This document shows positions 4,174 to 64,000 of a stretch of DNA of 64,000 nt, piece after piece; positions within the stretch are counted from its first letter, which is position 1, and each line of letters opens with the position of its first letter. The notes under the pieces were generated by a model. The model ran no database searches. It had not been told where the DNA came from and was given only the letters and a program-made list of their open reading frames with translations. The translations under genes and the position numbers were made by a program. The stretch is from contig JAKMXF010000066.1 of the NCBI GenBank assembly GCA_024704765.1, positions 310,001 through 374,000 of the forward strand, given 5' to 3'. Source of the stretch: Oopsacas minuta. Taxonomy: Eukaryota > Animalia > Porifera.

Positions 4174-5307
4174 TCAAAATATCTGTAAACAGTTTTCATC
4201 TTTCTCGCATACAACTATAATCCCTCCCGTGGCATCTATTGCTATACCAAATGGATAAGAGAATTCTCCTACTTCCTGACCCTCCTTTCCAATCACATGT
4301 ATCTGTTCTCCCTCCTGATTAAACACATATACACAGTGACTGTGATAATCACTTAGAATAATATTAAACATTCTATCTACATCGAAATAATAAGAACTCT
4401 CAATTTGCTTGCCATCACCTCGTGATATGAGTCTGTTCAGTAGAGTATGATCTGAATTAAACACGAACATACACAAATCGCTACAATCTAACACAAACAC
4501 CTTGTTTCGTTTAGTTTTGACGTCACGTGGTGATTTAAACAAGCCTTCACCAAAAGTTGAATGGAAAACAAGGTATTGTGTAAATACCTGTACTCTATGG
4601 TTATACCTGTCACAAATATAAATATTATTTGTTTGGGAAAATGTTGTTATGCCTAGAGGAGAATTGAACTGTCCTTCTCCATTTCCTTTACGACCAACAT
4701 TATCAATGAATTTCCCTTCTAAGTTATATGCAGTAAAATAATGTCCTTCATTTTGTGTGACATATACTCTATCTTGTCCAATGCAAATACCTCTAGGCAA
4801 ATTCATTTGATTGCTGAACATGAACAGGTATATGAGACTACGCGTGAATACTTGTACTCTGTCGTTATCCCTATCTACTACATATATATTACCAGTCTTT
4901 CGATGCACAGCTAAGCATCGGGGTGAGTTAAATTCACCAGAACGCTTTGAGGTAGAATTCTTGCAGCTGTAAACAATTGGAACCTGTTTAGACTTATAAT
5001 CAGGAATAATAGGTTTTGCCTGTGATACATGAGACGGTTTCGGCAGACAAACTTTAATAGAACCTAAATTTGTTATTTTACTTTCAAATAATGGATCAAA
5101 TGCAAATTCGATTGACTGCTCAATTTCTTTGTTAGATTTATCAATAAAATAATTCTTGTATACAGATTCTATTTCTTCGAGACGGGAGAGAAGCATGTTC
5201 TCCCTCTCTATGAGAGCTTTGTGTGAACATTGGAAGCTGTATTGGATACGTTTTCGTGTTTGTTCTACTTCATTTGTGAAAGTTGTTTTCAACTCAATAC
5301 TAGCCAT
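4174..5307 (-). CDS. Intronless coiled-coil + NHL-repeat beta-propeller protein (TRIM-NHL-like, no RING or B-box)
   Basis: 377-aa ORF. NHL repeats FNSPRCLAV...YVVDRDNDRVQVF, FNSPLGIT...YICDRYNHRVQVF and FSYPFGIAID. The helical N-terminus has no Cys/His zinc-ligand pattern. Confidence 0.9.
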   Translation of the reverse strand: MASIELKTTFTNEVEQTRKRIQYSFQCSHKALIERENMLLSRLEEIESVYKNYFIDKSNKEIEQSIEFAFDPLFESKITNLGSIKVCLPKPSHVSQAKPIIPDYKSKQVPIVYSCKNSTSKRSGEFNSPRCLAVHRKTGNIYVVDRDNDRVQVFTRSLIYLFMFSNQMNLPRGICIGQDRVYVTQNEGHYFTAYNLEGKFIDNVGRKGNGEGQFNSPLGITTFSQTNNIYICDRYNHRVQVFTQYLVFHSTFGEGLFKSPRDVKTKRNKVFVLDCSDLCMFVFNSDHTLLNRLISRGDGKQIESSYYFDVDRMFNIILSDYHSHCVYVFNQEGEQIHVIGKEGQEVGEFSYPFGIAIDATGGIIVVCEKDENCLQIF

Positions 5308-24558: not shown

Positions 24559-27500
24559 ATGGCGAACAAAAAAATTAATGCTATTGCGTCGCTGCAGAAT
24601 GGAAGTTTGGATAAAGAACTTTGTCGATTAGACGCCAACCAAGCTAGTAAAATTCTCAACCAAAACTCACCGAATCATTTCGGTAGAACGGTACTACATT
24701 TGGCATGTGAACACGGCCAATACGAAGCAGTTAAATGTTGTCTAGAATTCGGAGCAAGGCCGAATAATACATCTACCTCAGCTGATCTACGAAAAAGTCC
24801 TTTACATGTGTTAATACAAAAACTACCTCCAAATACTGTCGAAATAACCAAGTTGCTTCTGGCTTATCGAGCTGATCCTAAAATAGTAGATTCATCAAAG
24901 AATACTCCGCTTGACTATGCTCATCAAAAGAATCATAAACAACTCATTCAATTGCTTTCAAAGGCTACATCTATTTATCAGTCAGCCTCTGGTATAGCTA
25001 CTAGAGAAGCGCCGGTAATTCACAAAGAAATAGAAAATAAAGTTGAAGGATCGAACGAGAAAATTATGGAATTGTTATCAAAATGTTATTTAAAGACTCT
25101 CTCAACTTTCGATTACAATAACTGGTCGCTGATTAATCGTGCTATCGTAAATTCTAACTTCAAATTAGCTGAATCCCTTGTCGAACATACTCTTGAAATC
25201 CCATCCACTAAAAACCCATCAAATTTCTCTCCACTCCATCTACTAACAATTTTCAAGTGCACAACTCTATTTAAAAATATAATAACAAAGTTTCCTAGGC
25301 TACTTCTGAGTAGAGATAATGACAAGAATACTCCATTACATTTGGCTTGTCGTAACGGCGTTTTTGAGTTAGTTTGCCTCATGCTGCCTGACAACAGACC
25401 ACTACAGTACGTAGATGTAAATGCCACAAACATGCGAGGCACGACTCCATTACACTACGCAGCGAGAGAGGGACATATATGTATAACAGAGTATCTATTG
25501 CAGTGTACGAAAACTAATTGTATTGACAGTACAAAACAAACATTCTTATTGAAGGCTATTCTGTCAGAACGAATAGACCTGATTCACACGTTACTATCAA
25601 ATCATTCACATGTAGTCGGTCAGCTCATTAATTACCAGGACAATGAGGGTAGGACCTTTCTACAACATATAGTCTCTAAAGGTCTTCACAACATAGTCAG
25701 GCAAATTCTCAAGCTAAACCCATCAGTAACTACTGTTGGTTTACTGACACTACAAGGTTATAAGAAATACAAATCGACGTACGCAGAATTTGAATTCTCA
25801 TTAGATGAAGAGATAGATGGTATCGATGAGTCTTTGCCGCCAATCATGCCAAACGACTCAGTACAAATTTCTCAATTAAGACGCACTCCTAGTAATCCTT
25901 TGAAAAGTAGCAATAATTTGAATTCACTGGACACTAGTATTGATTTCTACCCTAGTTCGCAGAGAAACAGTTTTAACACGAGCACTAGTGGTAGTTACCC
26001 AAAATGCGGAAGTAGTTTGGAATCAAAAAATTCTGATAATGTGTCTGCTAATGTTAACGTGGGTAAACAATCCTATCCAACTGATATACCTCAAGAACAT
26101 TCCCGTAACGTGTCTAAATTCCAAAAGTCTTCTAATTTCATCCTCAACAAATCTACTAATGTAACGGTGCTTATAGAATCACTGTTGTTGGATGATTTAA
26201 GTAGCTTCCAACTAATAATCGATTATATCCTTGAAAAGAATATTCCTATATCAGCATTGCCAGATTTCCAAAGTGCGGTGTGTTTAGCAATTCGTATAAA
26301 GAAATGGAGAGCAGTTGAAATTCTTCTAAAACTAACTTACAATGAGAAAATAGAGTATGAAGTAATTTGGAACAGGCTATACCTCACAAACGAAGCTCTG
26401 AACGAAGTAATCCAAGATATTACATCATTCAAATTTCTCACTAGTACAGACATGGTATTTCAAAACCTGATGGTATTAGATATACACAATAATGAATTGA
26501 CTGAGATTCCGAGTTTCATAGTTCAAATGAAAGAGCTTAGAAGACTATCTCTTGTTAATAACAAAATAGAAAATATTTCTCACGAAATATTTTCAATGAA
26601 AGAATTGAGAGAACTTAACTTATCAGGAAATTCGGTAAAATTTATACATCATCTAGCGAATGAACCTCTAATCAGTTTATTAAAATCAAAACTTGATAAA
26701 TTAGAATTAGAAAACTGCGGACTTGAACAATTCCCACCAGTTATAGAAGAACTCTACAAGCTACATGATTTGAATTTATCGCAAAATAATATTAATTCAA
26801 TTCCGTGTTACATTTGGAAACATAAAGGAATACGAAGACTGAATTTATCCCGTAACAAACTGACCCACCTTACTACTAAGTTGCTACGACCTAATGCTAT
26901 AGTACGGAGTAGCAATAATATAGTAGGAGAAGTAAGGATGAGAGCACCGAGAAGATTCTCTACATATTACGATAAGAGGGGAAGTAGAGAGAGATTTCAA
27001 ACACTCCCAATCACCTCAGATTCTATACCAGTTAGAAGTGTGCAGAGAGCTTCATTTGAACACAGTATCATACCTGGACTACAGTTTAATGTACAGCTAA
27101 ATAATGACCTATCTGAGCTGAATTTATCTTACAATGAATTTGCTTATTTCCCAACAGACATGAGTGGACTTACTCCCACACTTAAGAAACTTAATATGTC
27201 TTACAACAAGATACAAACTATCTACTTAAGTCTGATTCCTTACACGCTGATCGAGTTGAATCTGGATGGGAATTTGATTGATACATTTTCTTGCGACGAT
27301 CCATACTCTAGATCAAAAGGCATTGCTGAGGGAACATCTACATTATGTAGTGAAGAACATGACGCACTTAACTGGTTAAAGAATCTATCCATTAATGACA
27401 ATAAACTGAAGGAATTCCCACTGTTAGTGCACTACAGCGAAAATGAAGGTTGTAGCAATATCATCAGGCAACATAATATGGAAAAAAGGTTAAGATTCCC

Positions 27501-30500
27501 AGTTCTAGAAGTTTTGAGTATTGTAAATAACGTAATAACATTGTTGACACCTGAAATTCAATACCAGGCTTCTATACAAGAAATATATCTAGACGGAAAT
27601 GCAGAATTAGCCAAATTACCATACGAAATTGGATATCTAAAATGCTTCAATAGACTACAAATTATTTCAGTTGAGAATTGTCCAAAAATTGGCAACATTC
27701 CACCACACATCTACAATCATGGAAATATCAATACACCACTGTTAATGCCTTATTTCAGAGCACAACTGAAAGGGAGTGTCCAGAATAACTTAGTCAAGTT
27801 GATGGTTATTGGTTCTTTCAACCAAGGAAAAACTAGTTTATTGAGGAGATTGAAAGGATTGGGTTTGACAGAGCGTAACCCAACCAAAGGAGTGGAGATA
27901 GATTCTTGGAAATGCGATTTCGGGAGGGCGAAATCAATAACATTTGTGACATGGGATTTTGCAGGTCAAGAAGAGTATTATGCTACGCATCAATGCTTCC
28001 TTAGCACAGGTGCCCTGTATATACTTTGTTTCTCATTGGAAACATTCACTGAAGATGCAAAGAGCATGCAAACAATGACAGAATGGCTGCAGTCCATTGA
28101 ACTACGTGCTCCCCGTTCACCTGTGATAATCGTAGGCACACATTTGGATAAAGTGAGTGAAAATGTTGCCCTAGTCATTAAGGAAACTTTACAAGAGAAA
28201 TTCGTAACTGAAGGAGCAAGCAGAATAGAACAACTCCCTCATGTAATTGATGTTATGCTAGTGTGTTGTATTCCTGAAAAAAGTTTTTTCTCCAAATTGA
28301 ACAAGAAAATGGATCAATTGAAAGATAGAATATTAGATGTAGTAGGACATCTCTCTATGCACTACAATCGTATACGACAGACTATATCTTATTTATACAA
28401 ACGTGATGCAGATTCTAAATCACCGACTCTACTTTTGAATCAACAAACTCCAAAAGATTATGAAAATCTTCGTGAAAAATTGTTCAAGGTGAGTTCTACA
28501 CTTCTTGTAGAGGCAAAACCGCCAATACTTAAAGATTCAGAATTGAAAAGTCACGCTGAACACATAATAGATAATCCTGACGATCTATTCGATGCAGTCG
28601 AGCATCTACACATGCAAGGAAGTATCTTACACTTCAATACTCCCCTATTAAAAGATGTTTACTTCTTAGATCCAAATTGGCTATGCAAACAAATGGCTAG
28701 AGTTATAGGTGCTCACACAGACACTAACAATTCCAATGGACTCGTTTCGTTAGTTGATTTGGAAAGTAGTTTAAAAGATATTTCACAATTCTGGAATAAG
28801 TTTGTGAGATTGTTAGAGCAATTCCAGATTATGTTAAGGTTCTCAGAGGAAGAAGTACTCATTCCCTCACAATTACCAGTCGAACCGATTAATCTTGTTG
28901 GTTTATACAAGATTTTCACTGAAAACTTATACCCTGATCATAAAGACAAATATTTCGTACGTATCTGGCCGCTGGTAAATGTACCACATGGGTTCTGGCC
29001 CAGGCTTTTATGTCGTGTAGCTCAAGATCCAGTGATAATGTCATTAGTCAGCAAGAAATCTCATGCCACAATATCTATTATGGGCTCGCTGAAGGAAAGA
29101 AAGGAAGAAATAAAACGAAAACGAATTATCTCTGATGCGAATTTACCAACATTTGATTCAGATATAAACTGGAATTTTTGGAGAAGTGGCGTTCAGCTTG
29201 TTGATAAGCATGGAGAAATTCAGTTTGAAATTATAGAACTGTCACAAGATAATCCTGAAATAGTGGAAGAGGATAATACACCAGATTGTTATATAGATCA
29301 GCATAGATTTTATATAGAGAAGAAATTTAGAGTTCTTTCAGTTGTTCATGTACAAAACGATGAACTCGCTACTGATTGTCAAATTTTCGTACGAATAACA
29401 CAACACATAAATTCCTTATTCGAAGCTTGGTTTCCAGGTATCCTTACTGACTATCAAGTCCCTAGTTACTATCCTTGCCCTCGTTGCTTCTATCAAGACA
29501 CAAAACAATCTGTACCGCATATACAAGATCAAGGATACAGCGGGACGTTCATTAAATTCGGGCAAACAATTTGGAGTACTTTCACAGAAGAACACTGCTT
29601 CAGGAGATCTGGAGAGAATTCCCCTGTAAAATGTCATTGGCATGGAAATATAGACATAAGCAGAATAGCTCCTGATGTCAAGCTATTGGATGTAGGACCA
29701 GATCGTGTATTAGATATGAACACAATCCGTCTAGGCTCACAATTGGGGGCTGGCACTTATGGAGTTGTGTACAAGGGTGAAATATGGGATCACTATGATA
29801 ATGACTCGATACCTTGTGCTATAAAGCTATTCGTAGGCAACACTTTCGGGAGAAGTTATGACCATATCCTTGAGCATATGTCAGAAGAAGATCAATGGAA
29901 TTCATATATAGAATTAAGGAAAGAGCTCTCACCCATGGTTAACCTAACACATCCTAATCTATCTCTACTCTTGGGTGTAACAATGTCACCTCTGCAGATT
30001 GTAATGGGGCTAGCACGAAAAGGTTCCTTACTTACAATGATTAACAAATACAGTGAGAAGAAAGCTATTTTCCATCCAAAGATAGCAGCTAGCTCTATTT
30101 TACAGATAGCTTCCGGACTGAACTATCTGCATTCTAACAATCTAGTACATCTTGACTTGAAAGCAGCTAATATATTAGTCTGGGATTTTCCAGAGCCAGA
30201 TGAACAAACAGCTGACTCAAAAGTACTTCTGAAACTTGCAGACTACGGCACAGTGTTACACTGCGATACATTGGGGGTACGTATGTCGAATTTGGTAGGA
30301 ACTCCTGGTTATATTGCCCCAGAAGTTGTGCTGTTCTCTGGGAAGCAGAGCTTCACATCTAAGGCAGATGTTTTCTCATTCGCAATGGTGTTGTATGAGA
30401 TTTTAAGCTACAGACCTCCTTTTGTTAATTTCGATAGCGAGCATGATCAGAAATGGGCGCCAGCACAAGGACGTAGACCCCTTTTACGCGCGGAAGAAAA

Positions 30501-32199
30501 ATACAGTCCTTGTTTGTTCCAAGACCTCATGACTGCTTGTTGGACAGCTGATCCTGACGACCGTCCTACCATGGAGGAATGTGAAAATATAGCCAGTAAT
30601 CCTCTATTTAGCGAAATTCGTAGTATAATGTCCTTTGAGAAAATGGTTAGATTCGCTTCCCATGCTGTTATCACCAACACCCTGAGTGAGACACGAATTC
30701 CTGGGGATTCTATGGATTTACAGCCGTTAGGCATGGAAGGAGGACTCACCGATTCCATGAAGAGGTATGGTAGTATGTCAATGGAGCCGAGAAAGCCAAG
30801 AATCAAATCTGACATAATTGACTTTGGAAACTTACTCACAGGGGAGAATACACAGATTTGGCTAGGTGCATTTAATGATCCGTATAGGAATAAAGTTGCA
30901 ATAGTACAGTATCTGCATGGGCAATTAGGAAGTCGTGTATGGTTTGTAGATGTTTTACCATCAGGGGGAGATGCCTACATAACAGTGCTTACTTCAGTTA
31001 ACAAGCAAGTATGGCTAGGTACTAATGAGGGAAAGATAATTGTGATTGATGGAACTTGCTTTAAGAAACTACCAGTTGAATATTCTAATTTAAATACAAA
31101 TGAAATACACGCAATTAAGCACGTTGAAATAATGAAGAAAGTGTTTATATCATTTCGCAGTAATGACGTTGCAATTCTAGAAGATAAATTGGAAGTGGAA
31201 CTATCAGGAAACTACAAATTTATTATAACAGTTTTCATTACAACAGATAATCCTATATTCACATTCCACCCTGTACAGAGGCATACTAACAGCTGGGAAG
31301 TATGGGGAACTAAGGATGGGTGTACCATAGAAGTTTTCCCGCAGTTACCCAATGGTAAACTCGGTCAGAACTTTAGCAAGTCATTATCAGTAGATCCTAC
31401 TGTTAAGTATCAGCGATTTCATTGCATCGCTTCCTGTTTTCAGGAGGATATACCCGAACAGAAAATAGATGGATATGCAGTAGTATGGATATCTGAATGG
31501 CAGAGAGCTACAGCTTATGTAATGGGGGTTTTGAGTAGGTCATTGAGAGCTGGTGTGCCAATACCTAAGGATTTGAATAATCCTGATGCGATTAAAGAGG
31601 TAAGATAATACAGTCCAACAGAACTCCTGTTATATCGAATACGGATACATTATAGAAATACCCGCTTATATCCAAGTCTGAAATTGCACAATTATAGTAT
31701 CGAAGTAACATAAATTACACCGGTTAATCAAAACCTGCTTATTTCGAAGTAATTATCGCGGTCACTTGAGCTTGAGTTTTGATTTGTTAATATATTCGTA
31801 CTAATTAGTGTGGAACAAATTGTTGCTTATATAGAATGAGCAAAGCCAAATGAATCTCTTTCGAATATGTACAATGTTATCCATGGTTTATTGTTGTGTA
31901 TCTGTGTTTAGATTTCTTCTATGTATAATAAAGGCAGGACAATCTACTTGGGAGTGAGTGATGGACACGTGTATAAATTTGATATGGTATCAAGACAATT
32001 GCTAAATTCCTATGCAATTCATCAAACTAAAGTCAGGAAAATAATTCCATTACCTGCACTAGCGAATGGTAGTGTTTGTGCTGAGAAATGCTGTGAAGAT
32101 CAGCAAATAGTTATAACAGTAGGTAACGGGTTCTATCAACACATTCCTTCTGTAAAGAAAAGCAGAGATTTGTGTCTTGTTGCATTCAGTTTGTCTTAA
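24559..32199 (+). CDS. LRRK: LRRK1-like ROCO protein (ankyrin, LRR, Roc GTPase, COR, kinase, WD40-like tail); exons 24559-31599 and 31912-32199
   Basis: Ankyrin repeats GRTVLHLACEHG, NTPLHLACRNG, TTPLHYAAREG. LRRs such as LRRLSLVNNKI. Roc motifs GSFNQGKTSL, PTKG, WDFAGQEEYY, GTHLD. Kinase motifs LGAGTYG, AIK, HLDLKAANIL, DYG, GTPGYIAPE. Donor GAG|gtaag at 31599/31600 and acceptor tttag|ATT at 31911/31912 are in phase. Confidence 0.95.
31611..31780. mobile_element. Family-1 MITE filling most of the single LRRK intron (right end degenerate)
   Basis: TA|CAGTC...AACTCCTGTTATATCGAA...TCGAAGTAATTATCGCGGTCACTTGAGCTT. Confidence 0.65.
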
Positions 32200-35100: not shown

Positions 35101-36213
35101 TAAATAATCATTTGATGCTATATTTAATATGATGAATATGCTTAGATATAAAATTTTACCAAAATGAACTAACAGCAGAGATATCCGTGTAAATATAATT
35201 ATTTCTATATAAAGTAATGCAAACTACAAGCTGTTGTGTAATATAATTTAGTGAACGCGTTGCAAAAATATTGTATCTTATAGGTGTACTGTTTGATGAA
35301 TTTAGACCAAGGCCAGTGGTTCGAATCCAAAGTGTAATTCTCCCCAGAAATTGACCTCTCTGCTAGTTGCTATTTAAATCATCATATCACTGCGAATAAT
35401 TATTATGCTTGATGTTTCAAAATAGGAGCCATGTATTTTGATTGGATTTACCTGAGAGATTGACAATGTAACTCAAACGTAGAACATAGCAAATAAGATT
35501 CGGTTGTAATATTTTAATCTAGTCTTATAAAATTCCCAAAATTGTTAAAAAATGTAATACAGTGGAACCTCGTAATACGAACCAAACGGACGGTTTGTTC
35601 GCTCTACCTAGTGTTAACTGCGTACATACTTTAGTGTACGGTATCAATTAACTCTATGGGCGAATTTCCAGAGCATATATAGAGCAATTACGTGTCGGAA
35701 AGGGTTCTAATAGCAAGTCATAGCACTCAACTTCCAATCTGAATATAATTAAATGAAAACTGTAAAGGATAGCGTGAATTAACACAAATTAACCTTACTA
35801 ATATACTTCCATAAGACAGTTTCTTATTGTAAGAAACCTATCAATTTTAATGTTAAATATTTATGAGATATATTCGTAGTAGTTAATAACGTATAATTGT
35901 CACGGTGCACAAAGCTAACTTGAGCGTGGATAAAGTAATCAAAAGTAACTATCTTGAGATTCATGATTGAAACTCTCAATAAATAATCACACGTGTATTT
36001 ATAGACACATCGGTACAAGTAACGAGATCCTAGGTAAACATCCAATTTGCAATGCAATGCAGCAAATTGCCTGTGAAGAGTATAAATAGTAATAATGCTC
36101 TGAAGCAAGTCAGACTACAACTACTATTTATGCAAAATTTTGTTTCCATCTCCTTCGTAAATTAAATTAATTCTCACACAATACAACATTCATTCCCACA
36201 AAAAACCTTGAAT

Positions 36214-38481
36214 ATGTATCAAATTCCACAAAGAAAACCCCTTACCCCAGATTTACATGGTAGTAACAAAAACTTTTTCACAAACAGAAATTATTCAAAT
36301 CCTGAAACGACAAAACCCAAAATTCGAACAAGTTTTACAATGAAACTTAAAGCTATTCTCAAACCACAGTCTGCATCTTCTCGTGTGCCTAAAGCTACTC
36401 GTACACCCTCTGGGAAGAAAGTAACTTGGAATTTGGATGAGGAACAAGTACAACCAGGAGAGTCAAATGTTGCAGAAGTAGAAGCATGGCCTTCTCCAGA
36501 TACCAAGGAAGATGCAGTTGAACCGGTTTCTAAGGAACATGGTAGTTATGTAATGTTACCAGGTATAAGTAGTGATGAAGACACCACCCCAACTCACGTA
36601 TCTCATCACAGACAAGATAATATTTACGAACCGATTATCCCTATCCACACCAGAACCTTGAATCCATTGAGAGCAGCTACATACCTTCCTAAAGTTTCAC
36701 ACAGACAAAGTTCTTCACTTCCAAGCGCAGAAACTCCAAATGAAAATCAGGTTTTAGATCATAAAAGATTTTCAAGTTTGGATTATTTAGAAGAAGAAAA
36801 GTTGAGTTACGAAAATCATCAAGAAGCGCCATGGTACAAAAAAGCTAATGTTGATTGGACCAAGAATAGATTGAAACCTGGTAGTGTTACAAAGCCAGTA
36901 CGATTTGACCTCAACTCTTGGTCAGAGAAGGAAAGAAATCATTCAATTTTAGATGATCTTTCACAGTTTCTTGATGAAAACACGGATTCGGCTGCATCGA
37001 ACAAGCGAATATCATTTCCTCCTGATGACCAAATATCTACAATTGAAAGTGATGTTTCTAGTGTTAATACATTTTTTGAGAATGAAGATCGAATTGTAAA
37101 TACAGAATTGCTACCGTTTTTGTACGAAACTCCTCTGCAATACCAGCCCTATACATCTACACTATCAAGCGCCTACAACACAATACTACCTCCATTGCAA
37201 CATCAACCTCCACGCAAATATCAAGAAAACTATATTATACTTCCAATGCAGAGTTATACAATAAGTACAGTTTGTGAGGTTACGTTTTCTAGTCAAATAA
37301 CTTTACTGCTCTCTGACTCACTAACAGAAATTACCTTTGAAACTAACGAAACTCCGTCCACACCAACCATAACGAAAAAAGAATCCCCCACAATTTATGA
37401 ATTATCAGATAGACAGTGTCCTCCTTTATATATTAACACCTCAACTTCCTTACCGCACCTAAACTGTGTTACCAAATCAAATCCTCGTATGAGCTATAGG
37501 CAAATGAGTCAAGAAGGCAAAAACACTACGCTTCCACGAGCGAATCGATCTCATCGATCTCGTTATGAACACTTTACAAATGAAGAATCTATTTGGACCA
37601 AACATAATTCGGTTCAACCAGTAGAAATGTGTGTCACTCCATCCAGTGGATCTGACCCTTACCTAGCATGCGATAAATCCACTGGACAAATGATTTCTCC
37701 CAATCTCAAACGGGTGCCATTCAGACGCGGGCATTTAGAGAAAAATCATCCACCAATGAAATCAACATCATTCTCACATCTGTACACAAGCTGCAACCAC
37801 CCACCATCGAGACCAGTAGGGTCCCTAAAATGCAGCTATTCAGCAAGTTGTGTTAGAGATGAACACCAGCAGAATCCAAGTTCTTACGTATGCTACACGG
37901 CTCATGACGCTACTCCAGCATATATAGCACAAGAATCACAGAGACCATATATGAATATAGACATAGAACAAATGAATCGTTACTGTATGCTAGGAGGGGA
38001 TGAGGATTTGAACATTGGTTATAGAGCTCCACCGCGATATTTCACACCTCATGCAATAGGAGTTTGCTCGGAATGCAAAGAATACATCTACCCAGCTCCT
38101 TGTCAACCCGTTAGAATAAATAAAAGAATATTCCATCCTGATTGTTTCAAGTGCACAGATTGCTATTCACTTCTACATGTATTGTCTTATCAAGAAGTTC
38201 AAGGCAAATTCTACTGTCTACGTGATTTCAAGAGACATATTGATTGTTATGTTTGTAAACAACCGCTTGCTGCTTATAGAGGAAGAGAAAGCCCTGTTAA
38301 TATATATGACAAGTTCTTTCACCCACAATGCTATCGCTGTACTTCATGCAGTACACAAAATCAGAAATTATCATTTGACGGAAGATGGCTACTTTGTATT
38401 CACTGTACACAAGCCAGACGTCAACAAACTATAAAGCCAACTCAATTAAAACCAAGGGTCACACTCGTCACTCTTCTTTAA
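36214..38481 (+). CDS. Intronless protein with a long low-complexity N-terminus and two C-terminal LIM domains
   Basis: First in-frame ATG at 36214. LIM1: CSEC...FHPDCFKCTDC...YCLRD. LIM2: CYVC...FHPQCYRCTSC...CIHC. Confidence 0.85.
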   Translation: MYQIPQRKPLTPDLHGSNKNFFTNRNYSNPETTKPKIRTSFTMKLKAILKPQSASSRVPKATRTPSGKKVTWNLDEEQVQPGESNVAEVEAWPSPDTKEDAVEPVSKEHGSYVMLPGISSDEDTTPTHVSHHRQDNIYEPIIPIHTRTLNPLRAATYLPKVSHRQSSSLPSAETPNENQVLDHKRFSSLDYLEEEKLSYENHQEAPWYKKANVDWTKNRLKPGSVTKPVRFDLNSWSEKERNHSILDDLSQFLDENTDSAASNKRISFPPDDQISTIESDVSSVNTFFENEDRIVNTELLPFLYETPLQYQPYTSTLSSAYNTILPPLQHQPPRKYQENYIILPMQSYTISTVCEVTFSSQITLLLSDSLTEITFETNETPSTPTITKKESPTIYELSDRQCPPLYINTSTSLPHLNCVTKSNPRMSYRQMSQEGKNTTLPRANRSHRSRYEHFTNEESIWTKHNSVQPVEMCVTPSSGSDPYLACDKSTGQMISPNLKRVPFRRGHLEKNHPPMKSTSFSHLYTSCNHPPSRPVGSLKCSYSASCVRDEHQQNPSSYVCYTAHDATPAYIAQESQRPYMNIDIEQMNRYCMLGGDEDLNIGYRAPPRYFTPHAIGVCSECKEYIYPAPCQPVRINKRIFHPDCFKCTDCYSLLHVLSYQEVQGKFYCLRDFKRHIDCYVCKQPLAAYRGRESPVNIYDKFFHPQCYRCTSCSTQNQKLSFDGRWLLCIHCTQARRQQTIKPTQLKPRVTLVTLL

Positions 38482-50600: not shown

Positions 50601-53600
50601 ACTTATCACATGCACAGAGGATCTCATGGTTTTAATCTAATGGGTCAGTGATAAATAATTTCCATAGACATACAGTCAACTCCCCCAATATCGAACACGG
50701 ATATAGCGAAGTCTGACATTGTACAAATATGGTCCCAAACTGTCAATATAGCAAAATAACAAATTCATCGGGTTATATCGAACTTCGCTTATATCAAAGT
50801 AATTATTGCAGTCCCTTGCGAGCTTCAATATAACAGGAGTTGACTGTAATCCTTCACAACTAAACTACGAATATTACAGATATATCAAACACGTCAGCAA
50901 ATACGTACACATAATCTGAGGACAATCGTTAATACTATATATAATAATTCAAACACTGATGTTACAGTAACAAATATCGCAGTTATCGACAGTAAATCGA
51001 AATATAAAGGAAAATATAAACTCAATTTAGGTATAGTGGTATACTAGGCTTATACAGATGTAACATAATACTCAGAATGAGAGGTTAAATACACAAAAAA
51101 ATTACAGAAGAATTAAATCAGTCAGTGAAGCATGCAAACAATTCTACTCACTATATTTGTATCTCTGCTGGTACAAAGGGGATATAGCGACGACACTCCC
51201 CCTCTAGGACAAGGGTATTTCATTCCAAAGCATAACTTGCTAGGGGAGCAACTATTAGGCGGGCAAACTCTACTCGACATGACAGCTGATTGTTGGAATT
51301 GTGTCAGAGACGAAGGTACATATCAGAAAACGGATGTGTACACAAATACGGAGAGATTTTACAGGTCTCTCACCTCGACTACTTCCCTCTCTCCCAAGCT
51401 AGAAACCGACTTCACGCTAGGAGCTACGCTAGACATAACCTCAAACGGGATTAGCGGGGGTGTGAGAAATCTCACTGGAGTATCTTTGAACGATTATACA
51501 ACTTCTTTAATTTGTTTTCTAAAAAGTGTGTGTTTGAGCAAAAACAAATTAAACATTGATTTCCAGAAGGATTTTGAAGCATTGAATCCTAGCATTAAGG
51601 AGCCTTGGTTGGAGTCTAATTGGGTAGATTACGAAACATTCTATAACAAATACGGATCTCACTTTATAACAGAAGTAGCATATGGAGCAAGATTTTATGA
51701 GCACGCATTTTCAGACGCAAGAATGAGCTATACTTCGCGAAATTTGACAGTTAGAGCATGCGCTGCATTAGCCGGGCCAGCTGGGATTGGTATTCTGGAG
51801 ATAGAAGCCTGTGAGGGCATAAATAAACAGGAAATAGACTCAGTGTCTTCTCTTGCTATCTACACACTTCTAGTTATAAGAGGGGGTACAGCTAAAACCA
51901 GGGCTGAGCTTTATAAGAACAGAACTGTTGCAGGAATAGCAAAGTTTATGAGTGAAGCAAATGCAACCGAAATGCCAATAAAGTACAATTTCATGCCAAT
52001 TTGGTCGCTCCTACAGTTGAGGTATCTAGACACAGAACACTACTCAAAGGCTAGGAACCTTGCTGCGTATTATCTGGGATTTGGTAATTATGGATGTGAA
52101 TACCAGCCTGTAATTAATACAAGCAAGTTCAAGGTGGAATATTACCAAAGGTTCGAATACGCTCCGACATCCACTGATAGCATTCCAACATTCCAATGCG
52201 TAATAGCGCCTCAGGGCTGTCACGCTGATACCGACTGTCACAAGCATGACATTATACGCTGCTCATGTCACGGAGATTCCTGTATCAGACATTTCCCTAA
52301 CACTCTGGATACTAGTGTTATCAAGAAAGTAGCTCGACCTAACTATGACATAAAATGGGGAGCATACGGTTGTGGACAACACCTCCTAAAGTGTAGTTGT
52401 GACAATATGGACTGGGGATATTCTACAGTATGGCAGCAGGATAAAGACACTGATTATCCTACCATTAAGTCATAAGGGAAACAACTATATATGATTTATG
52501 CATGATTTCTGGTAAAAGACATTTCATGGAGTAATTTGCCTGTAGTTTGTAGGTACGTATATTGTACACGTAGTTATAAATTATTCAAAATCATAAGACA
52601 CGAGATATTGATGATGGACTATTCTTACCTCTAGGGGGAGGTCCTCGGTAGGATGAACCTTGTCCTTGATAGTTTCCTACAATGAATTCACGTATTAATA
52701 CGGTATAAGCACGTGTACGTATTTCAATTAAGAAACATATCTACACAATTCTACAGTCAACGTAATTTAGTATAGGTCAATTTGTTAGGTAGATAGACTG
52801 TTTGTGGAATTACGTGCAATTGTTGTGATAGTATATCGTGGAACCTCTGAATAACGAACAATTTGTGGGTTGTAAATATAAATTATCGAAGTGTTCGATT
52901 CAAGATGCCAAATCGTATATATTTGCGACAAATCAGATTATTCCAATCGTGTAATAATTGAAAAATCTCACAAATATAAAATAAATTTTCATCAACAAAC
53001 ATGAATGGAGCGCGGCGAGAAACTAAGAAATTAATAATATTAGACTAGACCATTATAAACATAGAGAATTACGCTTATCAATAGTAAGTCTATCGTCTAT
53101 GCGGTTGGAACGCCATAAAATTTATCAAAAAGTATGAAACTGTAACCGCAAGATTGTTCAAATACCAAACGACAATTATCTATTTTTAATACAAATGAAA
53201 TACAACACAGATATGGTAGTGTAATATTACTATATACCTCTAGATCCATAATGATCCATTCCACCACCGCCCATACCAGTAGAATAGTCCTCTCTAGGAT
53301 AGTTAGGTGCACCGTAGTGTTGCTGGTCCTGATAAAAATAATTAAACATGAATATATAAGAGATATACTAACCAACCATTCCTCTAGGTGGAGGAGGCCC
53401 ATCATAGGAGGAGGTACCGCCCATACCCATAGATGGTTGTCTCCCTTGTCCCTCGTATGAGTCTGTAGGAGGAGTAGGGTCTCCATAGCTGGGAGGAGGC
53501 TGAGGGGGTCCGTACTGTTGTCCGGGGGCGGAGCCGTAAGAAGGTCCTCCCCTGTACTCAGGTTGCCCTGTACCACCACTTGCTCCACTGTAGCTAGTAT

Positions 53601-59600: not shown

Positions 59601-60469
59601 AGAATAGGATAATTGATAAACAAATTGGTAAAGACGTTTGATAATCTCACTTGTAAGTTGAATATGTAGCAGCTTGAGTAGGGTCAGTAGCTGGAGCTAC
59701 ACTAGTAGAGGCAGCAGACACAGCAGCAACACCGCTAGCACTGGTAGAGTAACTACTGTATGGATTCTGATACTGAGGATAGCTATAGGATAGGATAAAT
59801 AAGTTTCAATTGACCTACAACATGCAAGTAAGAAGTAATAATCAGGTATATACCTAGAATAAGCAGCAGCAGTGCTCCCTGTAGACACAGAGGGAGTAGT
59901 TGTGGCTGTAGACTGACCAGTGAGAGAGTAGTTAACTCCGTACAGAGCCTGTGCTGCAGCCGCAGTAGAACTATCGTATAGAGCTAATGGAATAAATGTT
60001 GAAGTAAAGTGAGAGTATTTTATCATATGGCATGGAAATTTTAGAGACCATATATAACTACAGCATAATCTCCATAAACAGGGAAAATGCTATCTAGGGT
60101 CCTCGTTGCTGCCAAATTCCCCCTTCGCGGAGGTACATGTTCATTTGTATGGGCTAGGAGTTCGCTCTATTTATTTTTTCCACTCAGTTTCCAGAAATTC
60201 CGTTTCCACAGGCCCCCGTAAGTGGAAGAATCACTAAAACTCAAAAACTTTGATATAAGAAATGTATGTCAAAATATAATTTTCATAAACGATAAATTAC
60301 TGCATCAAATCGACATGTATTTACCTGTTGGCGCAGGGGTAGCAGTACTGACAGCTAAAGAGGTAGAAGTACCCGTGGCGTCATAAGCAACACTAGCAAC
60401 ACCTGGTATAGCGTAGGGGAGAGGTGGAGGCATCAGGTAGGGATAATACGAAGGATAGCTGTTTGTCAT
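44650..60469 (-). CDS. EWSR1/FUS: FET-family RNA-binding protein (EWS/FUS/TAF15-like), about 15 coding exons
   Basis: S/Y/T/A/Q/G-rich N-terminal exons (60469-52628) and RGG exons. FET-type [13 protein letters not shown]...[17 protein letters not shown]...[19 protein letters not shown]. RanBP2 zinc finger [23 protein letters not shown]-terminal PY-NLS RRVKPY*. Junction phases match across the long introns. Confidence 0.9.
44739..44897. mobile_element. Tc1/pogo-type MITE in the last FET intron
   Basis: TA|CAGTGGATGACAGTTATAAGAACACC versus reverse complement of the right end CAGTAGGTTCCGGATATAAGAACGCC. Confidence 0.6.
50103..50294. mobile_element. Family-1 MITE, reverse orientation
   Basis: TA|CAGTCAGCTCCCCTTATATCGAAGCTCAAGGGATCGCG is the reverse complement of the family right arm. 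Confidence 0.65.
50673..50846. mobile_element. Best-preserved family-1 Tc1/pogo-type MITE with TA target-site duplication
   Basis: TA|CAGTCAACTCC...GGAGTTGACTG|TA: an 11-bp perfect terminal inverted repeat with TA on both sides. Confidence 0.88.
51132..52475 (+). CDS. Secreted MACPF (perforin-like) protein with a Cys-rich C-terminus, intronless, nested antisense in a FET intron
   Basis: Signal peptide [24 protein letters not shown] near the N-terminus. MACPF signature region [22 protein letters not shown], plus IRGG and [11 protein letters not shown]-terminal CVIAPQGC...DC...CSCHGDSC. Confidence 0.88.
   Translation: MQTILLTIFVSLLVQRGYSDDTPPLGQGYFIPKHNLLGEQLLGGQTLLDMTADCWNCVRDEGTYQKTDVYTNTERFYRSLTSTTSLSPKLETDFTLGATLDITSNGISGGVRNLTGVSLNDYTTSLICFLKSVCLSKNKLNIDFQKDFEALNPSIKEPWLESNWVDYETFYNKYGSHFITEVAYGARFYEHAFSDARMSYTSRNLTVRACAALAGPAGIGILEIEACEGINKQEIDSVSSLAIYTLLVIRGGTAKTRAELYKNRTVAGIAKFMSEANATEMPIKYNFMPIWSLLQLRYLDTEHYSKARNLAAYYLGFGNYGCEYQPVINTSKFKVEYYQRFEYAPTSTDSIPTFQCVIAPQGCHADTDCHKHDIIRCSCHGDSCIRHFPNTLDTSVIKKVARPNYDIKWGAYGCGQHLLKCSCDNMDWGYSTVWQQDKDTDYPTIKS
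53866..53984. mobile_element. hAT-superfamily MITE with an 8-bp target-site duplication
   Basis: ATCTAAGT|CAGCGGTTCCCAA...TTGGGAACCGCT|ATCTAAGT (direct repeats at 53858-53865 and 53985-53992). Confidence 0.85.
55218..55523 (+). CDS. Orphan 101-aa Lys/Glu-rich ORF nested in a FET intron
   Basis: ATG start and purine-rich, coding-like composition. No recognisable domain. Confidence 0.4.
   Translation: MERFINKFVLKVSVKKYYQRLPSEDTPNELKKEQIQEMNTENIPTQTESKLTPPSSTKLFTLIKRGKIEREANRGKYTQLEANCNLSKEEMEEIYNNNFTD
56132..56617 (+). CDS. Orphan ~161-aa protein (basic N-terminus, Ser/acidic patch, CKNCGGC motif) nested in a FET intron
   Basis: First ATG in a 200-codon open frame. Protein-like composition with an NLS-like [13 protein letters not shown] run. 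No family recognised. Confidence 0.55.
   Translation: MPQLKPKSKKSKKKSKKTRNGKNKNWYKKLEGPSQFYSEKVFNTNSSSESDSDFEIDWGEERNEVSYELTLKSPTDDSVIVCSVPAKPTGKKYMKELIHCKNCGGCSLELGWEIQTEEGKFYVIDYHLIFTMEELLAIILTERIQKYARTRNVKKKASKSN
56819..57009. mobile_element. MITE with 22-bp TIRs, superfamily unassigned
   Basis: AACCATGGATGGTAGATTTCGT...ACGAAATCCACCATCCATGGTT (one mismatch). Confidence 0.78.
57826..58287 (+). CDS. LRAT/PLAAT-fold protein with substituted catalytic residues (pseudoenzyme), nested in a FET intron
   Basis: KGDIV...[15 protein letters not shown]...[18 protein letters not shown] aligns with HYGVYLG..VIHF..NCEHF..YCATG of the two other copies. Starts MGIMNS (MGxxxS). Confidence 0.8.
   Translation: MGIMNSKFSRISPETVEKGDIVVNKVKYPRQYAVYIGEGKVIEYIHKGNSVGEIITNNLKSFHKNGVLRIRGIRIFRLEYPERVDRAYNLLINPTQEWNMYNHRFMNSETFVRYCTTGMLNDRTIPMRRRIVWSIADKINNSINGRARKRMEI
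60061..60235. mobile_element. Degenerate family-2 MITE in the first coding intron of the FET gene
   Basis: TA|CAGCATAATCTCCAT at the left and GTGGAAGAATCACT at the right. Internal CTGCCAAATTCCCC is shared with 11130-11229. Confidence 0.45.
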
Positions 60470-61508
60470 CTCTCAATGATGAAATTATATAAGTCACAAT
60501 ATGCTAATTATAGAATTAAAATATAGTCAACTACATACGGATTATAATAGCTGAGGTTGCATAACAATACCAATGTTTTCAGTGTAGTCTATTGGCTCAT
60601 AACAACCATGATTAGTGTCAACCTGAGGAGAAAACTACACAATTCACGGAGTATGTAAATTTGTAAATAAATTATATTCTATATATAGTATACAAAGGTG
60701 ATAATTATGTATTCAAATATTAAATCGTGAGTAGAATAATTTTACCCATAACTCTTATGGGTAAACCATTTGGTTTACTTACAAGTGTAATGGGTAAAAT
60801 TATCGCACAGTGCGGAGAAGATTACTTGGATAAAGACGAATAATCTCAATCCAGTGAATTCACAATTCTTATAAGAGCCAGTCACACAGTCAGGACTCTA
60901 TGAATATACAGTAGTGCTTTGAATTGATATTGTTACCTTATAGCTTAGTATCATAGTCAGTCTACCCGGGCACTGATTAGTACAAACTAGACAAATTGCT
61001 ACAAATTTTGCATACATACATTTGGAGCCTAGATTGCCTTAGAGTAGCCAATTCAATACCTACGTCTCCTTCGATACGATTGCTCAAGTTGAACTGATCA
61101 ATTCTTATTATACAACTAACTGGTGTAAATCCAAACGAGTGATTTAATTCTGTTAGTTTATTAAATGACTGATTATTGAATGTCAGCTTCTGATATGAAA
61201 AGGAGTGACATGTGATCTGTTCAGTGTTATTTCAATGAAATCGAAGCCATTTTCAAATTGTTTCTACTGGGGTACTAACTAGTACTCATTGGACGAATTG
61301 CTACATTTTGCATCCTGCGATAATATGGTTGCCAAACAGCTCAATTCCTTTTATCCAACTTCAACAACTAATCTGTATGGACATGACTTTAGTGAGTTTA
61401 GATTCCTTGAATTTTATAGTTTATACGTAATTTATTTGAATGTTTTAATCCCAAATTGGATAATTAACTTTAATAATCACACATCTGAATTATCAAATAG
61501 CCATTAGA

Positions 61509-63072
61509 ATGGCATCAAACATACCATCCAATGAGATAGAACAGTTCGATGATATCTCTAAACAAATCCAAGAGAAATTCGACCTTCTCATCCGTCGATT
61601 GATCGTAAGGAGAGATGGTCTCTTAGACAGACTATTACAACTCAAGGAGGATTATATCAACAAAGAAACAACTCGAATTTCATCCATAAAAGATCTAGAA
61701 AGAATACGAAAAGAAATAGAAGAAATGAGGAGTAGAGTAAATACCAATAATCAGATCCATGAACAAGCTGCTCAGTTATACGATAAGGGTCTTGAGGATC
61801 TCAGAGTACCAACAAATCTACAAATCCCTGTATTCCATTATCCATCATTACAACAAATCAAATCACTAATTGATCAATTCGGGGAGATAGAGTTGGAGGT
61901 ACCAAACCAGACTGAAAAGGAACCTAAGGTAACACCTCAAGCAAATCTGTGCTGGAAGAAGTCATTTCCATCATTAGTGGGGGGAAACAGCTGGAAGATG
62001 GGGAATTCCCTTTCCGACTACGATACCCAGATGGAGAGCTGCATAAATGATGTTCCCAGGTGAATATAAATATGATGTATAATAATCCCTAATTGAATTT
62101 TATTTTAGTGGTAACATAGAAATATTCATCAAAACTCTGACTGGTAAGATAATCACTCTTTATGTTAAGCCTACTGACACTATTGAAGTATTACGTGCTA
62201 ACATCCGAGACAAGGAAGGGATCCCTTCCAACCAGCGGCTCATATTTGCTGGGGAACAGCTAAAAGATGAGAGAACCCTATCCGACTACAATATCAAGAA
62301 CGGGAGTACACTCCATTTGCATGTAGTATTCCGGCTTAAGAATGGCATACAAATATTCATCAATACTCTGACTGGTAAGACAATAACTCTTTATGTTAAG
62401 CCTAGTGACACCATTGAAAACGTATGTTATCAAATTCAGGACAGGGAAGGGATCCCTCCCGACCAGCAACGCCTCATATTTAGAGGGAAACAGCTGGAAG
62501 ATTGGAGAACACTATCCGACTACAATATCAATAACGGGAGTACACTCCATTTAGTACTCCGGCCTAAGAATGCCATGGAAATATTCATCAAAACTCTGAC
62601 TGGTAGGACTATCACCCTTGATGTTGGGCTTAGTGACACCATTGAAAACGTGCGTTATAAGATTCAGGACAAGGAAGGGATCCCTCCCGACCAGCAACGC
62701 CTCATATTTGAAGGGAAACAGCTGGAAGATTGGAGAACACTATCCGACTACAATATCAATAACGGGAGTACACTCCATTTAGTACTCCGGCCTAAGAATG
62801 CCATGGAAATATTCATCAAAACTCTGACTGGTAGGACTATCACCCTTGATGTTGGGCTTAGTGACACCATTGAAAACGTGCGTTATAAGATTCAGGACAA
62901 GGAAGGGATCCCTCCCGACCAGCAACGCCTCATATTTGAAGGGAAACAGCTGGAAGATTGGAGAACACTATCCTACTACAATATCAATAACGGGAGTACA
63001 CTCCATTTAGAACTCCGGCTTAAGAATGGAGAAATAATTAGAAGATGGATGAACACTATTCTACCTAAATAG
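61509..63072 (+). CDS. Coiled-coil protein fused to four tandem non-canonical ubiquitin repeats; predicted exons 61509-62059 and 62109-63072
   Basis: Donor CCCAG|gtgaat and acceptor tattttag|TGGTAAC bound a 49-nt phase-2 intron joining ORF 61509 in frame to an ATG-less open frame. Ubiquitin units start at 62116, 62347, 62575 and 62803 (IFIKTLTG...EGIP...RLIF.G.QL.D.RTLS.YNI..GSTLHL). Confidence 0.75.
62116..63030 (+). repeat. Tandem array of four ~228-bp ubiquitin-coding units
   Basis: Unit 1 is 231 bp and units 2-4 are 228 bp. Units 3 and 4 are nearly identical in nucleotide sequence. Confidence 0.95.
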
Positions 63073-63073
63073 G

Positions 63074-63213
63074 TAATACGAAGGATAGCTGTTAGTCATC
63101 CCCCAACACAGATTAGTGTAATTATGCCACAATATGCTAATTATAGGAATGTAATATAGTCGTATACATAGAGATTATAATAGCTGAGGTTTCATAATAA
63201 TACATTGTTTCAG
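63074..63213. repeat. Diverged duplicate of the FET gene 5' end (60444-~60592)
   Basis: TAATACGAAGGATAGCTGTT[T/A]GTCATC...CACAATATGCTAATTATAG...GATTATAATAGCTGAGGTT occurs at both positions. Confidence 0.88.
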
Positions 63214-63479
63214 GGGCGGATACGCACAGGTTTAAGAGAATCACGGTGATAAATGAGTAAATGTGTTGGATACCCGTTGGGTGTGTTTCTCCCCTTTGCT
63301 ATTCTATTGGACATCAAGTGCCACTATTTGACACCAACCAAATTTGTCTGACCAATAGGCTACTAATATATGTGATTATGACATCTCAGGGCACCGCCCT
63401 CCTCTGTATGTAACTCTGATTGATTATATATCAGCCATAATTGTCATTGGGGTCACAGCTAAAGTAACTAACCATTAGA

Positions 63480-63572
63480 ATGGCATCAAAAATGGGATAG
63501 AACAGTTCGATGATATCTCCTAACAAATCGACGAGAAATTCGACCTTCTCATCTGCCGATTGATCTTAAGGA
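63480..63572 (+). pseudogene. Frameshifted, truncated copy of the 5' end of the 61509 coiled-coil gene
   Basis: CCATTAGAATGGCATCAAA...GATAGAACAGTTCGATGATATCTC...GAGAAATTCGACCTTCTCATC matches 61501-61610, but with a 10-nt deletion and an AAA>TAA change. Confidence 0.85.
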
Positions 63573-63645
63573 TACATGCTCTCTTAAGCCCGCCATACAT
63601 ACATTTTTCTATCGAGATGTTGATTGGTGCTGCTATAATTATACA

Positions 63646-64000
63646 CACTGTGCGAAGAAGATTACTTGGATAAAGACGAATAATCTCAATTCAGTGAATT
63701 CACAATTCTTATAAGAGCCAGTCACACAGTCAGGACTTCATGAATATAAAGTAGTGCTTTGGATTGATATTGTTACCTTATAGCTTAGTATCATAGTCAG
63801 TCTACCCGGGCACTGATTAGTACAAACTAGACAAATTGCTACAAATTTTGCATACATACATTTGGAGCCTAGATTGCCTTAGAGTAGCCAATTCAATACC
63901 TACGTCTCCTTCGATACGATTGCTCAAGTTGAACTGATCAATTCTTATTATACAACTAACTGGTGTAAATCCAAACGAGTGATTTAATTCTGTTAGTTTA
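63646..64000. repeat. Near-identical duplicate of 60806-61160, continuing past the window end
   Basis: The same 355-nt sequence (AGAAGATTACTTGGATAAAGACG...GATTTAATTCTGTTAGTTTA) with only scattered substitutions. Confidence 0.95.

Follow-up and report, generated by a model that had tools for sequence, protein, structure and literature searches.

The window examined here is a stretch of 64,000 nucleotides from Oopsacas minuta, identical to contig JAKMXF010000066.1 of GCA_024704765.1 over 5,488 overlapping bases. Its last part contains a gene on the plus strand (61509 to 63072) in which a helical N-terminal module is joined across a 49-nt intron to four ubiquitin-like units. The features of this gene and its surroundings are as follows.

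60816 to 61391 (5' limit undefined), plus strand: upstream noncoding exon (X2 contig ending exactly at 61391; GT..AG joint 61391 to 61501)
61392 to 61500, plus strand: 5' untranslated region (5'UTR) intron of 109 nt, GT..AG (joint in run X2, depth 68; unspliced contig, depth 238)
61509 to 61910, plus strand: N-terminal helical module, amino acids 1 to ~134, TRIM-like, without RING or B-box (family profile, AlphaFold2)
61911 to 62059, plus strand: linker, a decayed C-terminal half of a ubiquitin unit (comparison with the paralogue, repeats)
62060 to 62108, plus strand: 49-nt GT..AG intron of phase 2 (deposited model; homologous 76-nt paralogue intron spliced)
62116 to 62346, plus strand: ubiquitin-like unit 1, 77 amino acids, the most diverged, with indels of -3 and +6 nt (frame, Pfam)
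62347 to 62574, plus strand: ubiquitin-like unit 2, ending LRPKNA (frame, Pfam)
62575 to 62802, plus strand: ubiquitin-like unit 3, ending LRPKNA (frame, Pfam)
62803 to 63030, plus strand: ubiquitin-like unit 4, ending LRLKNG (frame, Pfam)
63031 to 63072, plus strand: tail of 13 amino acids and stop, the decayed remnant of a fifth unit truncated where the duplication joins (repeat family D5)
63074 to 63203, no strand assigned: copy of 60444 to 60570 with which the next tandem duplication unit opens (repeat families D10 and D11)
63466 to 63600, plus strand: beginning of exon 1 as a dead, stop-containing copy of 89% identity (repeat families D8 and D12)

Elsewhere in the window, a single intronless open reading frame (ORF) of 2,349 amino acids on the plus strand (24559 to 31608) encodes an ankyrin-LRR-Roc-COR-kinase protein of the ROCO/LRRK type. 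A LIM-domain ORF lies at 36208 to 38481 and a MACPF ORF at 51132 to 52475.

The upstream part of the gene appears in the ORF track as ORF A (61509 to 62063, 184 amino acids), and the ubiquitin frame is open from ~62086; both agree with the preliminary description of this DNA. Tandem Repeats Finder detects 4.0 copies of a 228-nt period with 90% matches at 62115 to 63028, and the Pfam ubiquitin family (PF00240) matches the array in four stretches with an E value of 4.7e-111 (363 bits versus a gathering cutoff of 25.4). Unit 1 is the extra unit that had been reported as missing from the ORF track. The reading frame also confirms that no ATG occurs until unit 3, which contains the first in-frame ATG of the ubiquitin frame; units 1 and 2 begin with Ile. 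Excision of the phase-2 intron yields an open coding sequence of 1,515 nt (504 codons plus stop), with 12 residues read across the spliced junction, while its retention supplies the TGA that ends ORF A. The splice signals are intact and consist of the donor CAG/GTGAAT, a CTAAT branch-like site, a T-rich tract, and AG.

The deposited annotation contains a 504-residue product with four ubiquitin domains at exactly the coordinates of the gene. Its span of 1,564 nt exceeds the coding sequence by 49 nt, so that the deposited model requires the proposed intron. The 49-nt GT-AG phase-2 intron that had been postulated to join the two ORFs in frame is thus the same as that of the deposited BRAKER1 model. 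The gene models of O. minuta were produced by BRAKER1 with TopHat RNA-seq hints (PMC10280926), and this genome paper mentions neither ubiquitin nor NHL nor TRIM. The gene, which had been called hidden, is hidden from the ORF track but already modelled in GenBank. The gene model is public, and the architecture of a coiled coil combined with ubiquitin repeats is undescribed. Where a search called for the full 504-residue spliced protein, a paralogue, P0121 (KAI6659069.1), represented it.

The N-terminal module belongs to an unnamed sponge family with 82 clusters in the representative library. A profile of its N-terminal ~140 amino acids, built without the window sequences, matches ORF A over profile positions 1 to 143 with an E value of 3.4e-43. 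AlphaFold2, supplied with an alignment of 43 family sequences, predicts the module with a pLDDT of 91.8 and helices at residues 7 to 76, 81 to 98, and 114 to 122. No Pfam family matches the module in ORF A at an E value of ≤0.01. A RING finds no Pfam match on ORF A, in which the helix begins at residue 7, and a B-box finds neither a match nor room ahead of the helix. Because both the RING and the B-box are absent, the protein is not a TRIM, and the module may work like the stalk of one.

For the earlier designation of the coiled coil as TRIM type, the TRIM matches recur, and all of them remain below threshold. The family profile finds TRIM45 in the PDB with an E value of 0.017, and PF25600 matches 4 of the 43 family members with a best E value of 0.0056, both subthreshold. 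The Atlas gives TRIM71 with a TM score of 0.68 and B-box and TRIM_CC clusters among the feature hits, also subthreshold. A Foldseek search of the module against the PDB gave no match with an E value below 0.4. The VIA second look found the coiled coils of Brat (Z score of 7.6 over 103 amino acids) and TRIM5 (Z score of 8.0), values within the noise of helical folds, and otherwise generic helical hairpins. The sequence matches and predicted models suggest, four times and each time below threshold, a possible kinship of this stalk to the TRIM coiled coils.

A search for alternative C-terminal partners of the coiled coil, which had been recommended, shows the ligand-binding NHL propeller as the usual partner, with C2 and ubiquitin-like partners also found. 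Local classification of 92 proteins assigned NHL to 44, C2 to 2, and ubiquitin-like domains to 3; by Pfam, the NHL partner is present in 26 of 60 family members. The two C2 members are named Tollip-like in GenBank. The homologue search with ORF A in its length band found no stand-alone relative of this size in the index. The claimed resemblance to NHL proteins is valid at the level of the family, but the NHL gene originally chosen for comparison (4174 to 5307) is a weak, truncated member, with a pairwise E value of 8e-4 over 45 amino acids and a family-profile E value of 0.07. This minus-strand gene carries a shortened module in which ~50 residues of the long-helix region are missing in comparison with its relatives.

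Fusions of this module with ubiquitin-like domains are also present in ENA assembly ERZ25072740, where the tandem genes P0176 and P0159 lie beside a coiled-coil/NHL gene. Both encode the module and a ubiquitin-like domain as uninterrupted ORFs. In P0176, a single in-frame TGA occupies the position of Arg74, where CGA would be expected, and beyond it the frame continues into a second unit (L002:4380-4860); this codon represents a recent nonsense mutation or, alternatively, a site of read-through. None of the ubiquitin-like units of this locus has a Gly-Gly end. A maximum-likelihood tree of the module places the Oopsacas pair and the ERZ25072740 pair in different well-supported clades, each among NHL-type members, and one common clade for all ubiquitin-fused members is rejected by the AU test (p = 4.7e-5). 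This indicates at least two events of fusion or of an exchange of the C-terminal partner. The nesting of the fused pair among NHL-type members further shows that domain shuffling within an NHL-type family, as put forward in the preliminary description, was the right idea.

The second member of the Oopsacas pair is the paralogue P0121, the best match to ORF A among 1.84 billion representative proteins (82% identical over the whole of ORF A). This hypothetical protein of 417 amino acids is encoded ~3 kb downstream, just beyond the window end, by a gene with the same exon-intron build. It carries three ubiquitin-like units and one 76-nt GT..AG phase-2 intron at the homologous place (..VVPR/DN-IKIFIK). 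The two copies are ~99% identical over 61412 to 61900 and divergent beyond. A PB1-ZZ-NBR1-type gene, encoding a ubiquitin-reading autophagy receptor, and a Y-family DNA polymerase gene lie directly downstream of the paralogue (L001:8169-13330, past the window end); this neighborhood may be coincidental.

The linker of the paralogue is, in frame, the C-terminal half of a ubiquitin unit (..RKQLEDESTL..). In the window copy, the last ~85 nt of exon 1 are a decayed half unit that is partly out of frame, and the linker differs from that of the paralogue in that 21 nt are inserted, 7 nt lost, and 1 nt gained. Two frameshifts, which compensate each other within ~60 nt, put ~20 linker codons (~61940 to 62000) into another frame, after which the original one resumes. 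The 13-residue tail belongs to repeat family D5 and is 73% identical to the middle part of a ubiquitin unit. The half unit, this tail relic, and the dead copy at 63466 to 63600 are absent from the preliminary description. The stretch from 60444 to 60570 comprises the first codons and the upstream region of a minus-strand low-complexity (FET-like) gene, and its copy directly after the stop of the ubiquitin gene marks the junction of a tandem duplication of ~2.6 kb. The locus is a clean case of domain shuffling via tandem duplication, its scars being the half units, the frameshifts that offset each other, and the intron at the edge of a unit. A direct repeat of 300 nt with 98% identity is found upstream of both gene copies (60806 to 61105 and 63646 to 63945), with a partial third copy at 61263 to 61305; it either belongs to the duplicated stretch or is a small mobile element.

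The ubiquitin-like units are ~72 to 78% identical to ubiquitin, with ~17 substitutions per unit. Polyubiquitins dominate the homologue search with this part of the protein, which gave no match closer than ~75% identity. Units 1 to 4 of the window copy end in RLKNG, RPKNA, RPKNA, and RLKNG, respectively. None of these is Gly-Gly, and the last unit continues into 13 further residues, which leaves no free Gly-Gly C terminus. As a ubiquitin source or polyubiquitin precursor, the array is ruled out because Gly-Gly is missing in every unit. By sequence, the units are integral ubiquitin-like domains, with the fold inside a larger polypeptide and no processing site. Among the seven units of both copies, Leu8 (Ile in two), Ile44, His68, Arg42, Arg72, and Gly47 are retained. 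Val70 is found in five units, Lys48 in six, and Lys63 in one, and the exchange G53W is common to six of the seven.

Pairwise dN/dS values among the seven units are 0.56 to 0.89 for older and 1.1 to 2.9 for recent comparisons, far from the behavior of ubiquitin itself. Variation is found at 1 of 14 core positions (a Val-to-Leu exchange) versus 37 of 62 positions elsewhere (Fisher p = 6e-4); these 14 positions form the classical hydrophobic core of ubiquitin. Five core codons show synonymous change. The three indels within units are all multiples of 3 nt, and in a neutral simulation on the unit tree, all seven units stayed free of stops in 2.7% of the runs. These findings speak against neutral decay, and the pattern reads as a unit fold that is probably maintained with a surface that is free or diversifying. 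Judging from dN/dS values of ~0.6 to 2.9, constraint on the amino acids of the units is not strong, and the sequence of the window copy taken alone would also be compatible with neutral decay.

Evidence on transcription comes from four runs of one sample that contain the locus, the contigs of which were compared over 61100 to 62345, a stretch that leaves the 228-nt repeat outside. Runs X1, X3, and X4 are DNA-like, with even depth and contigs through both introns; these runs confirm the linker sequence of the window copy, free of gaps. Run X2 is RNA-like, with a far higher depth in exon sequence. It contains the spliced junction of the paralogue, which is absent from the genome and seen as the joined form alone, and a loose end at 62112 matches the spliced paralogue coding sequence and nowhere in genomic DNA. 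The junction sequence demonstrates that the paralogue fusion mRNA exists. For the window copy, the 30-mer on the donor side of the joint from 61391 to 61501 is unique, and its presence in X2 shows that this copy gives rise to RNA with a processed 5' part. The 5'UTR intron is mostly unspliced in X2 (238 versus 68), and since the library is unstranded, antisense or read-through RNA may contribute to the unspliced form.

A spliced 62059/62109 junction had been named as a check on the proposed gene; no spliced contig of the window copy is found among the X2 contigs, and the intron-retaining contig is abundant. The runs are, however, stored as contigs, which drop minor forms and cannot show the absence of a minor spliced form. 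The intron-retaining contig has a depth of 428, compared to ~500 to 650 for copy-specific exon contigs. Its first position, 62029, precedes the donor by about one k-mer, and the DNA-like runs are unbroken at this point. This start hints at a branch in the assembly graph and proves nothing. Paralogue variants reach about twice the depth of the window copy in X2.

These contigs give some weight to a reading of the window copy as the decaying member of the pair. Its intron would be mostly retained, its product would at best be the 184-residue stalk, its array would be untranslated 3' sequence, and only the paralogue would make the fusion. Besides the abundance of the intron-retaining form, the lack of a listed spliced contig, and the twofold depth of the paralogue variants, this reading is consistent with the frameshifted linker, the shortening of the intron from 76 to 49 nt, a dN/dS of ~1, and the adjoining dead gene fragment. 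On the other hand, the splice signals of the intron are intact, the compensating indel restores a frame that then stays open for 320 more codons, and the RNA-seq-guided annotation picked the spliced model. The lack of a spliced contig is also what would be seen where minor forms are dropped, and this gene has its 5'UTR intron mostly unspliced in the same run as well. Decay of the window copy is considered possible but rather doubtful, and this copy may be spliced at 62059/62109.

It is quite unlikely that both copies are transcribed by-products of birth and death without a selected function, the fused frame having stayed open simply because little time has passed since duplication and fusion. 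Such an origin would agree with dN/dS values near or above 1, with the relic half units, relic tail, and dead fragment, and with the in-frame TGA between the units of the two-unit gene of ERZ25072740. It is difficult to reconcile with a fold core that is conserved while the surface varies (p = 6e-4), a chance of 0.027 under neutrality that no stop arises, unit indels that keep the frame, and the appearance of the same architecture twice. Two separate genes, one for a small coiled-coil protein and one for an ordinary polyubiquitin precursor supplying free ubiquitin, are extremely improbable despite the two ORFs in the bacterial-style ORF track, since no unit of this ~72 to 78% identical array ends in Gly-Gly, no ATG lies ahead of unit 3, both parts are joined in the paralogue mRNA, and the annotation contains one gene.

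The explanation that is favored, with some reserve, is a real gene with one noncoding and two coding exons, part of a tandem pair, that encodes a RING-less TRIM-like adaptor with a hard-wired mimic of a ubiquitin chain. The product would be a cytosolic protein composed of a helical hairpin stalk of ~135 amino acids, a relic linker, four ubiquitin-like domains, and a relic tail. The stalk would be the oligomerizing module of the sponge coiled-coil/NHL family without RING and B-box and would mediate self-association or pairing with relatives of the coiled-coil/NHL type. Release by deubiquitinases and E1-dependent conjugation both need the Gly-Gly of ubiquitin. Lacking this motif, the units are presumably neither released by deubiquitinases nor conjugated. 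The array would then stay on the stalk permanently and resemble a linear ubiquitin chain. Through the kept residues Leu8, Ile44, His68, Arg42, and Arg72 and the mostly kept Val70 and Lys48, it could recruit ubiquitin-binding machinery; candidate partners are the proteasome or p97, autophagy receptors, and NZF/UBAN-type adaptors. The likeliest role, as far as the sequence allows a prediction, would be that of a nonenzymatic adaptor. Dimerization through the stalk and binding of these partners are putative.

A more far-reaching scenario, which is put forward as unlikely, regards the family as a RING-less TRIM-like branch in which the chain-building enzyme was replaced by its product. A deubiquitinase-proof, genetically encoded mimic of a linear chain, carried on the stalk type that NHL "catcher" paralogues also have, would pair with them and wire ligand capture to ubiquitin readers of autophagy, the proteasome, or the NZF/UBAN adaptors without a ligase, an arrangement that would have evolved at least twice in sponges.

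At present, the gene product stands as a hypothetical protein in the annotation, restricted to glass sponge(s). Should it actually be produced, the favored adaptor reading would provide a natural case of a design otherwise restricted to the laboratory, an uncleavable look-alike of a ubiquitin chain on an oligomerizing stalk. The resemblance of the family to TRIM-NHL proteins minus the ligase parts points to a possible E3-free coupling of recognition modules to ubiquitin readers, which would concern an early-branching animal. Recurrent fusion, a conserved fold, and a fast surface form the pattern of an arms race or of a recognition family, and this pattern gives a testable link between sponge immunity and ubiquitin signaling.

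Among known systems, the TRIM-NHL proteins (Brat, TRIM71, and TRIM2/3/32) share with the window protein a long helical hairpin stalk that precedes the C-terminal module. NHL propellers occur in its relatives, and the matches to the coiled coils of TRIM45, Brat, TRIM5, and TRIM71 are weak but repeated. In contrast to these proteins, the window protein is devoid of the RING, the B-box, and the filamin domain, and ubiquitin-like units replace the NHL propeller. Polyubiquitin precursors (UBB/UBC) and diverged polyubiquitin-like genes show the same head-to-tail units of 76 amino acids, the period of 228 nt, and descent from ubiquitin. Polyubiquitin precursors have units identical or nearly identical to ubiquitin that end in Arg-Gly-Gly for release by deubiquitinases, and their translation begins with the first Met of the array; the window gene instead has a stalk, an intron before the array, no initiator Met in unit 1, and no Gly-Gly.

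OASL, ISG15, and FAT10 likewise contain two or more ubiquitin-like domains in tandem. Those of OASL lie C-terminal to another domain and are not conjugated; they are two divergent units on an OAS fold, compared to four near-ubiquitin units on a coiled coil here. Conjugation and a terminal Gly-Gly characterize ISG15 and FAT10, whereas the window array lacks this motif. Linear noncleavable ubiquitin fusions, engineered to mimic ubiquitylation, are a standard approach (review PMC9703124; PMC7102961). In its layout, known here from sequence, the window gene is a natural counterpart of these fusions, although the engineered forms use G76V ubiquitin at a mostly N-terminal position, whereas the window units are diverged and C-terminal. 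Comparable systems are also the coiled-coil/NHL and coiled-coil/C2 paralogues of Oopsacas itself, such as KAI6650872.1 ("Toll-interacting protein B-like"), which have the same N-terminal module with 36 to 48% identity and differ in the C-terminal partner.
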